64,000 nt of DNA from Podarcis melisellensis (Eukaryota), in assembly GCA_964234715.1 (NCBI GenBank), contig OZ174290.1. One strand, 5' to 3'. Both the position numbers and the translations under genes were made by a program. Shown in pieces: positions 29,673-51,894 of this stretch. The notes under the pieces are model-generated. The model saw nothing but the letters and a program-made list of their open reading frames with translations. It was not told the DNA's origin and searched no databases. Each line of letters begins with the position of its first letter. Position 1 is the stretch's first letter.

Positions 29673-30987
29673 TCAGTGGAAGGGAGGAGAGTGTGTTCCG
29701 AGATGGCTGGCAGGAATAGGCAGGAGATACGCAAGCTCACATTCTGATTAAAGCCAGGGGGGAAATTGAGGGCTTTTAAAAGCTCGCCCCTCATTTGAGT
29801 TTGTTTCTGAACCCAAGCTCAGAGGACTGCACCAGCATCCCTGGACAAAATTTGACAAAGGACAGAAAACCCTCCCAGCATCTCCTCGTCCCTGCAGCCC
29901 GGGGCACCTTTGATTACCAGCTCCTTATTGCTTTTGAGAAGCTCCTCCTCCTCAATGGTGGCTGGTCCCTATCATGCAGCCCCAACTGCTGTTCTACAGA
30001 TCCTTGACTTGACTGTCAGCACTTACAGACTCTTGGCCTGTAGAATTGCCTTCCGCACAACCTTCTGCCCTGCCCTGTCTCAGCGGGCCTATCTCAGGGT
30101 AGCCATATTCAAGAGTCTTCCTCATTCACATCTAAGCAGGGCACTGGACCAGCTCTAGGTATGAGAGGAACCCTCAACAATGATGGGCCTTTTGGGCTCC
30201 CTCCCACATCAGTGACCTCCCTGTAGCCTTACCTGGTGGCAGCGACACACAGCAGCACTCTGATGAGTACCAGGCAGTTGTGTCTGAGGGAGCTTCCATT
30301 TTTGTTTCCCACAGTGCCGCTTCCATAGCCTCCATTCAGAGCATTGTGGAGGATTAAAAGGGTGTCCCTCACTCAGCAGGGTTCCAGAAATACTTTTTGA
30401 AAAGTGTGTGTGCTGTGTATTGATGCTGGACCTGGTGGGGGCTTTGATGTTCACTGCAAAAGAGTGCAGGGCTTGGCAGGAGTTGAAGCTTGCTTCCTCC
30501 CCCGGCCACACTCATCCCTTCAAGCACTTTTCTCCTGCAGCCCAAACCACTGGACCTAAGGCTCACCGCCTGCCTTCTGCTTTGACCCGGGAGTTTCATT
30601 TTGTGCTGCTTCAATGGAAGATCCACTCACATGTTGATTTTGAATTTTTGCACAAAATAAGAAGGAATATAGGCTCCCGTCTCTGCTTTGGCAGGACCAC
30701 TGGCTGCCCATTCACAACTGTGCTGATTGCTCTGAATTTCTCCGTTATTATGTCCCATGGGCAGCTGCCACTTTTACCTTGCAGGAGAAAGGGAATGGCA
30801 TCAAAGCGCTTCCACTCTTAAGACCCACCCAAACTCCTCTGCAGTCAATGCTCTCTCATACATACACACACACAGTTGTTCCCGCTCATACTCGCCCTTA
30901 ACCTGCCTCTTTTGTTGTGGCCGTTGTAAACACTGGCTGTCCGTTGCACCTTTCCTCTTACCCCTTCTTGTTTTTCCCCACGGCCAG

Positions 30988-31047
30988 GTTTTCCGGCAGC
31001 AGCCTACGGACCAGTAGCAGCGGCAGTGGCAGCAGCAAGAGGATCAG
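30988..31047 (+). CDS. MSI2: MSI2 constitutive exon (human exon 11 equivalent), 60 nt: (G)[19 protein letters not shown](G)
   Basis: Pyrimidine tract 30950-30980, ggccAG acceptor 30986-30987, donor CAG|GTAGGG at 31048; matches human [22 protein letters not shown] minus one Ala. Confidence 0.96.
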
Positions 31048-31104
31048 GTAGGGGGGGCCGTGGAAGAGGCGGCTACATGGCATACCTTCAGAATGCAGGG
31101 CCAG
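31048..31104 (+). CDS. MSI2: Alternative 5' splice-site extension of exon 11, 57 nt: GRGGRGRGGYMAYLQNAGP
   Basis: Open frame continues to a second donor CAG|GTAAAA at 31105, preserving phase 1; resembles a segment recalled from teleost msi2 isoforms. Confidence 0.75.
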
Positions 31105-31766
31105 GTAAAAGCTCTGTCGGTATTCTATGTGGCTGCAGCTGTCCATCCCTTTCTCTGACTTTTCTCACAGTGATCTGGGGGTGCGGGGAAACCCACCAAA
31201 CAAAACCAAATACTACAAGCAGAGCCCATAAGACTCAGAGCAGAGCATAGGCTGTAAGACCAGATGGTCTTTGCGGATCCACCCAGTACAAAGTACACCC
31301 TCCTGGGAGCTGTCAACTGGACCTTTTATGAAAATGTCAAGGACAACAAAAGTTTTCATTTCTCCACAGTTTGCACTGGGCTAACAACGCAATCACACTC
31401 ACACCCACATATACACACACCTGTTAATTCCTCAACTTGTTAGGGCAGCAACCTGCATCTCCAACTTTAATGTTTGGGACGAATGCAGTGAGTAAGTTAC
31501 TCTCAGTGGTGGCCCAATCCAAAGCAAGAAACCACATATCCATTAATATCAACAAGGATTCCAAATTAGGGTGTTTAGGAATGCTCTATCAAACTTTGAT
31601 CTATGGAGGGTACCATGATCAACCTCCTACAAATCAGCTTAGCTATTTAGTAAGTTCCGTTTATTCATCTGTCTCGTGAGAAAAGGGAACCATAGTGTGT
31701 GTCCCTGCCCTTTGAAATGGTGGCACTCCAGATCTGGCCAATGCGAACAGGTCTAGTATTATACAG

Positions 31767-51717: not shown

Positions 51718-51894
51718 GGATCCCCGATTACGGTTTCTATTCTCCGCCCGGTGACCAACGGGCTCAATTATCCTACGCGGACTATGGTTCCATGGGGCCT
51801 CGGGTGGCTCAGATGCTTCGTAGCGAGCACCCTGCTTCAGCGAGTAACTCCCCCCTTCACCACCTTCCCAGCCCGGATCAATTTAAAAGCCCAG
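51718..51894 (+). CDS. MSI2: MSI2 177-nt cassette exon: (G)IPDYGFYSPPGDQRAQLSYADYGSMGPRVAQMLRSEHPASASNSPLHHLPSPDQFKSP(G)
   Basis: tctccAG acceptor 51716-51717, donor CAG|GTTTGT at 51895, 59 codons with no stop in phase 1; GC/CpG-rich island in AT-rich intron; similar to a segment recalled from fish msi2. Confidence 0.85.

Follow-up and report, generated by a model that had tools for sequence, protein, structure and literature searches.

A conserved RG-rich extension of a Musashi-2 exon lies between two in-phase 5' splice sites in lizard DNA and may serve both coding and splicing

Our analysis of a 64,000-nucleotide stretch of DNA (the window) indicates that it very probably carries the lizard orthologue of Musashi-2 (MSI2), in which one exon offers two 5' splice sites in competition, separated by 57 bases. 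As an isoform this is already known from public annotation, which includes an identical lacertid peptide, and it is modest as a discovery. As far as we have seen, what seems undescribed are the frozen codons of the extension, the conserved piece of intron behind it and the erosion of its RG box towards mammals; a literature search (MSI2 with RGG, PRMT or msi2b splice variants) found no paper describing or testing the RG insert or its methylation. The argument draws on the following features:

30988, plus strand: start of the MSI2 exon, with the acceptor AG at 30986-30987.
30988..31047, plus strand: constitutive part of the exon, encoding (G)FPAAAYGPVAAAVAAARGS, ending at the proximal donor and matching MSI2 proteins.
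31047/31048, plus strand: proximal donor with GT at 31048-31049, CAG/GTAGGGGGGG, in the wider context TCAG/GTAGGGGGGGCC.
31048..31057, plus strand: proximal 5' splice site GTAGGG with its G-run, G7 at 31051-31057 (+4 to +10).
31048..31104, plus strand: alternative extension of 57 nt, encoding GRGGRGRGGYMAYLQNAGP, intron with the proximal donor and exon with the distal donor.
31104/31105, plus strand: distal donor with GT at 31105-31106, CAG/GTAAAA, in the wider context CCAG/GTAAAAGC.
31105..31150, plus strand: distal 5' splice site (GTAAAA) and conserved intronic element (GCTCTGTCGGTATTCTATGTGGCTGCAGCT...), lizard-to-fish identity 0.72.
31062..31144, plus strand: predicted RNA hairpin, from an RNAalifold consensus.
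51718..51893, plus strand: 59-residue cassette exon (GIPDYGFYSPPGDQRAQLSYADYGSMGPRVAQ...KSPG), annotated splice partner of the distal donor.

Translation of the frame at 30990-31103 gives FPAAAYGPVAAAVAAARGSGRGGRGRGGYMAYLQNAGP, and within it the 57-nt extension amounts to 19 in-frame codons with no stop. Both donors have the same phase, each leaving one G of a split codon, so that the frame is kept with either. Two in-phase CAG/GT donors with an open frame between them constitute an alternative 5' splice site, and each fits the donor consensus MAG/GTRAGT, which we used for scoring both, at seven of nine positions: both lack +6T, the proximal one also +4A and the distal one also +5G. In the long form the bases of the proximal donor and its G-run are read as (G)GT AGG GGG GGC, that is, Gly-Arg-Gly-Gly. 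The first-pass annotation had stated that use of the distal donor (31105) appends an in-frame RG-rich segment and that a G7 run follows the proximal donor, and the window sequence confirms both.

The proximal donor, GGUAGGG in RNA (window 31048-31052), also contains a single UAG, the core Musashi binding motif. This lone UAG may be a coincidence; if Musashi bound it, donor choice could come to depend on the level of Musashi.

The assignment to MSI2 comes from the peptide and from the order of the neighbouring exons. An exhaustive search with the 38-residue exon peptide alone returned 23 library representatives, aligned over essentially the whole peptide and 78-97% identical to it, and those with a source name are all MSI2-type proteins. 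Most of the 23 are open reading frames from genomic contigs, with some spliced models among them, such as that of the shark Mustelus asterias (P0004), whose insert is spliced to the cassette exon. A preceding MSI2 exon lies at about 4346 on the same strand as the two-donor exon, and these two and the cassette at 51718-51893 stand in order on that one strand; such a peptide match together with collinear neighbours is what we expect of an MSI2 orthologue. The next constitutive MSI2 exon falls outside the window. Pfam domains are confined to the two RRMs, and the C-terminal region of MSI2, in whose disordered half the insert sits, has none.

The cassette is ancient too, and is annotated already. 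In Lacerta agilis isoform X14 (P0211), ...YLQNAGP is joined straight to the cassette peptide of the window (the first 34 residues were compared), and the same join between distal donor and cassette is annotated in gecko, shark, bichir, lungfish and many teleosts, as well as in monotremes with a diverged cassette (GGPEYGFYPLPSEER...). In all, the distal donor is annotated with three acceptors, one belonging to the cassette exon and two to the next exon.

How widely is the extension shared? Its spread was drawn from the exhaustive search, from three word searches restricted to the insert region (cyprinid, bichir and marsupial queries, with 202, 220 and 267 matches, respectively) and from cluster look-ups. 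A peptide identical to that of the window is annotated in the Lacerta agilis MSI2 isoforms X12 (P0170, XP_033027249.1) and X14 (P0211). Predicted isoforms in RefSeq, Ensembl and UniProt (Lacerta agilis X12, Polypterus msi2b X3) place the segment in the same exon, at the same distal donor and at the same position in the protein; these annotations are computed, and the sole sequence difference between the predicted Lacerta agilis isoform and the window is one fewer alanine in the poly-alanine tract of the latter. Among squamates the insert is annotated in Lacerta agilis, Anolis carolinensis, A. sagrei, Pogona, Sceloporus and Euleptes, among turtles in Pelodiscus, Macrochelys, Chrysemys, Carettochelys and Pangshura, and among crocodilians in Alligator and Gavialis. 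It is likewise annotated in lungfish (Protopterus), bichir (Polypterus), reedfish, gar (Lepisosteus), bowfin (Amia), the sharks Mustelus and Heptranchias, and more than 100 teleost msi2a and msi2b clusters, the large ones having 109, 126 and 141 members; the predicted teleost msi2a and msi2b proteins with the insert have about 407-408 residues. Support at the transcript level comes from fish, in a 407-residue full-length open reading frame on a 2,434-nt Logan contig (P0105) and in P0164 and P0204, all three of which can only be spliced transcripts.

The poly-alanine tract of the window (31017-31037), VAAAVAAARGS, is one alanine codon shorter than that of Lacerta agilis and most other species (VAAAAVAAARGS), a difference that may reflect another lacertid species or a polymorphism in length. 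In Alligator (P0157, P0193, P0194) and marsupials (P0176, P0184, P0191), the insert is followed by unrelated, apparently frame-shifted tails (...NAGAEGVSEAFFPASLTLG..., ...CAGEEHTWMSRQDW...); these point to additional splice variants beyond the distal donor or to faulty annotation there.

In every major jawed-vertebrate lineage sampled the insert has 19 residues, and the event is at least as old as the ancestor shared by all jawed vertebrates. It is rich in arginine, glycine and tyrosine, with a di-RGG/tri-RG motif and then a tyrosine-rich GGYMAY placed directly after the poly-alanine tract. We took an RGG/RG box to be two RGG or three RG motifs spaced 0-4 residues apart. The window's GRGGRGRGG, with three RG and two RGG, shows both the di-RGG and the tri-RG pattern, while the widespread form GRGARGRGG has three RG and one RGG. 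By lineage the inserts are:

Shark: GRGARGRGGYMAYPQNVGA, three RG.
Bichir and lungfish: GRGARGRGGYMAYPQNAGA, three RG.
Gecko: GRGARGRGGYMAYPQNTGA, three RG.
Lacertid and window: GRGGRGRGGYMAYLQNAGP, three RG (two RGG).
Turtle: GRGACGRGGYMAYPQNAGE, two RG.
Alligator: GRGACGRGGYMAYPQNAGA, two RG.
Platypus: GREVYGRGGYTAYPQAAGA, one RG.
Marsupial: GREVYGRGGYTAYPQCAGE, one RG.

Judged from these RG counts, which fall from three in shark to one in marsupials, the RG-rich character is ancestral and decays towards mammals. The great age that had been proposed for the segment is borne out by the shark, bichir, lungfish and squamate annotations. Its optional use, proposed with it, is supported by species annotated both with and without the insert: Pelodiscus (P0159 and P0160 versus P0185 and P0186), Protopterus (P0195 versus P0196) and two monotremes. 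The further claim that mammalian MSI2 lacks the segment holds for the published human and mouse isoforms, but not for marsupials and monotremes, which have annotated 19-residue versions with eroded RG motifs (GREVYGRGGY...). No placental, bird or amphibian with the insert appeared among the best 120 listed cluster representatives, a weak sign of true absence given that 90% clusters pool isoforms that have the insert with isoforms that lack it.

At the nucleotide level, we aligned the window with eight exon-bearing genomic contigs, giving nine loci; one of the eight is a close sauropsid (L001) and seven are fish-like (L002-L008), none is human-looking, and no placental-mammal DNA was included. 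TCAG/GTAGGGG is invariant in all nine. The run after the proximal donor has 7, 7, 6, 5, 6, 6, 6, 4 and 6 G, hence at least four at every locus, which makes it a conserved G-run by the measure of three or more G close behind a 5' splice site. Arg is encoded by AGG in nine of nine loci and the Gly after it by GGG in eight, and the codons of the RG box as a whole are nearly frozen (GGT AGG GGG GSC CGT GGA AGA GGC GGC TAC). The extension, with a lizard-to-fish identity of 0.83, surpasses the constitutive part of the exon (0.73); the first 46 intron bases reach 0.72, against 0.28 in background intron (31151-31214 downstream and the last 57 bases of the upstream intron, each 0.28). Because the codons are frozen, TCAG/GTAGGGG invariant, the G-run at least four long at all loci and identity above that of the constitutive part, synonymous sites in the extension are under RNA-level constraint. 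The proposal in the first-pass annotation that the same nucleotides act in splicing and in coding gains support from the invariant splice-site string, the ubiquitous G-run and these near-frozen synonymous sites.

Coding-type conservation, which had been put forward as a check on the segment, fails in its simple form. Across the nine loci, changes at first, second and third codon positions number 2/0/23 in the constitutive part, the classic coding pattern, versus 12/8/10 in the extension, where there is no third-position excess; the downstream intron has 14/19/16. That the extension is coding is instead supported by its constant length, its in-frame indels, the spliced models and the cDNA contigs. 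The frame is open in nine of nine loci and the distal GT kept in eight, the exception having AT. Indels within the extension are +3 and -6 only, while those immediately beyond the distal donor measure +4, +1 and +1. By chance alone, an open frame leading to an in-frame GT 57 nt downstream would be nothing unusual; the extension goes beyond chance because it is conserved, as seen in the 23 representatives that match the 38-residue peptide, in the 19-residue length from shark to lizard and in the open frame at every locus.

The exceptional locus is fish-like (L004:343-523). Its distal donor has become CAGATAA, its insert has degraded to GRGAHGGAGHMAYSQTAGA and its RG motifs are lost; the proximal donor, the G-run and the downstream intron element are all retained. 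One paralogue or lineage here seems to be losing the coding use by natural decay.

One might read the 57 bases as a conserved intronic splicing-regulatory element whose open frame is incidental, the long isoforms being splicing noise or annotation carry-over. The lack of codon periodicity would fit such an element, as would the nearly equal conservation of the adjoining 46 bases of true intron and the open reading frame fragments on genomic contigs, which read straight through both donors. We nevertheless consider this very unlikely: a length of 19 codons is fixed from sharks to mammals, indels keep the frame within the extension and lose it (+4 and +1) just beyond, no locus of the nine has a stop and eight keep the distal GT, the insert occurs in the teleost clusters of 109, 126 and 141 members, and a full-length, cDNA-sized contig encodes it (P0105). 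The joint loss of the distal GT and the RG motifs in L004 is also what one would expect if coding and splicing decay together.

Even with the extension accepted as coding, the distal donor could be the main or only one in the lizard, so that the extension is effectively constitutive and the conserved proximal GT little used. All squamate isoforms retrieved carry the insert (Lacerta X12 and X14, Anolis, Pogona, Sceloporus and Euleptes), as do all inspected fish MSI2 proteins, though the searches were aimed at the insert and did not sample insert-free isoforms; for the same reason, that no insert-free Lacerta isoform was seen has to be read in the light of insert-directed searches. RefSeq models can be propagated partly by homology. 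Insert-free isoforms are annotated in turtle, lungfish and echidna, and the proximal donor, the AGG codon and the G-run are invariant in nine of nine loci, which is hard to explain if the site is unused. We therefore regard constitutive use as improbable, if less so than an incidental frame, and infer alternative use in the lizard because other species show both forms and the proximal donor does not vary.

A third question is how the extension relates to the 18-residue insert of mammalian MSI2, whose sequence we take to be VLNSYSAQPNFGAPASPA, in agreement with the segment that follows the RG insert in relatives. In P0170 (Lacerta X12), P0155, P0159 and P0169, a separate VLNSYSAQPNFGAPASPA segment comes after the RG insert; both are also found in this order in Sceloporus, turtles and lungfish. 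Mouse MSI2 isoforms 1 and 2 have 346 and 328 residues, respectively, a difference of 18 (PMC3319613). The corresponding insert of human MSI2-324 comprises residues 242-259 and is produced when an alternative 3' acceptor of exon 12 is spliced to the exon-11 donor that both forms use; in human cells it shifts MSI2 from the cytoplasm to the nucleus and changes translational output (PMC13228403, a 2026 preprint). The junction in the protein is identical (after ...AAARGS) and the size similar, and one could on that ground see the window's segment as the lizard copy of the mammalian insert. We rejected this identification, to which we give next to no credence: the mammalian insert is derived from an acceptor of the next exon and the 57-nt extension is bounded by a donor, and both segments occur in one protein in Lacerta X12 (P0170), as they do in Sceloporus, turtles and lungfish. 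The two inserts share an exon junction and a place in the C-terminal disordered region; they differ in that the mammalian one originates at an acceptor, is unrelated in sequence and has no RG motifs. Because of the acceptor origin and the co-occurrence, they are different events at one junction, and that junction is a proven site of isoform-specific function.

The conserved piece of intron behind the distal donor, about 46 bases long (GTAAAAGCTCTGTCGGTATTCTATGTGGCTGCAGCT), is about 72% identical between the lizard and the fish-like loci, compared with about 28% in the surrounding intron. We treat 31105-31150 as a non-coding conserved element because its indels are not multiples of three. In the RNAalifold consensus the 3' half of the extension (GCGGCUACAUGGCAUACC) pairs with the intronic element (GGUAUUCUAUGUGGCUGC), which places the distal donor in the apical loop; the predicted arms lie at 31069-31086 and about 31120-31137. 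Over the nine loci, 95.1% of cells are paired versus 94.6% in shuffles, with one double change, and covariation is not above the control, since 106 of 500 shuffles reach its score. The z-scores of the minimum free energy are strong in the window and L001-L004 (-3.0 to -4.3) and weak in L005-L008 (-0.2 to -1.6), the four teleost-like loci; when all 181 nt of the stretch taken from the window were folded, the value was -1.9. As a working hypothesis built on this folding model, the hairpin would explain the conservation of the intron.

The consensus fold also pairs the G-run (31052-31058) with the pyrimidine-rich start of the exon (30988-30993; GYUUCC). The columns concerned (A1, 1-6 with 74-79) are nearly invariant and hence uninformative on pairing.

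On this basis, we propose the following model. Splicing at 31047 would yield the short form, with ...AAARGS joined to the next exon, and splicing at 31104 would keep the 19 extra in-frame codons, so that the 57 bases would serve both as coding sequence and as carrier of the proximal donor and its G-run. Together, the extension and about 46 conserved intron bases could fold into a hairpin that encloses the distal donor, and the near-invariance of synonymous sites in the extension would be due to such an RNA-level role. hnRNP H and F bind G-runs, and RGG boxes are PRMT substrates and ligands of RNA or transport receptors. The G-run may act as a putative hnRNP H/F-type element that favours the proximal donor when intronic, the predicted hairpin may tune how accessible the distal donor is, and the RG/RGG-Tyr insert may alter RNA affinity, arginine methylation or the nucleo-cytoplasmic distribution of the long isoform. 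The third RNA-contact module proposed in the first-pass annotation, and a part in condensates, would be further putative roles of the insert. A role in localisation is plausible by analogy with the human data on the 18-residue insert.

In its widest form the model is a tentative one, which we hold to be possible rather than probable. The extension and about 46 nt of intron would be a dual-use element more than 400 million years old, an age that follows from the dating of the lineages sampled, whose RG codons are frozen by the donor, the G-run and a hairpin arm; the RG box would have eroded towards mammals (three RG in shark, lungfish and squamates, two in turtles and crocodilians, one in monotremes and marsupials, and none annotated in placentals) with the RNA scaffold kept, and the insert, by the same analogy, would set the nuclear/cytoplasmic partition or the RNA avidity of MSI2.

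Each part of this model has a likeness among known systems. In PLP1/DM20, competing 5' splice sites are chosen through a G-run, G triplets acting as intronic enhancers bound by hnRNP H/F. There, as in MSI2, one exon has two donors and the G-run immediately downstream of the upstream donor is intronic or exonic depending on the choice. The MSI2 run differs in that it itself encodes Arg-Gly-Gly in the long form, and its link to hnRNP H/F is putative. For the protein, hnRNP A1, hnRNP AB and D, and DAZAP1 have RGG/RG boxes and alternatively spliced Gly/Tyr-rich C-terminal exons that alter localisation and RNA binding. MSI2 resembles such hnRNP A/B-type proteins in its two N-terminal RRMs and its disordered Gly/Tyr/Arg-rich tail; compared with their boxes, its RG motif is very short (three RG in nine residues) and a putative site of methylation and RNA binding. 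MSI2 already has a constitutive TRGRARG stretch upstream of the insert. Stem-loops at regulated 5' splice sites are known from MAPT exon 10 and from SMN2 exon 7 (TSL2). The likeness would lie in a predicted local hairpin that includes a regulated donor and would be conserved with the adjacent intron; unlike in those cases, the MSI2 donor is predicted in the loop and not in the stem, and covariation does not exceed that of shuffles.

What is the relevance of this extension for Musashi-2? MSI2 is a much-studied RNA-binding protein of stem cells and cancer, with isoforms of opposite activities. The RG-rich insert is a second, older optional module at the junction of the human 18-residue insert; it is the common annotated form in fishes, is annotated in reptiles and is apparently eroded or lost in mammals. 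The MSI2 extension may therefore offer a convenient case in which to study coding and splicing signals that lie on shared bases, and the effect of the loss of an RG box in mammals.
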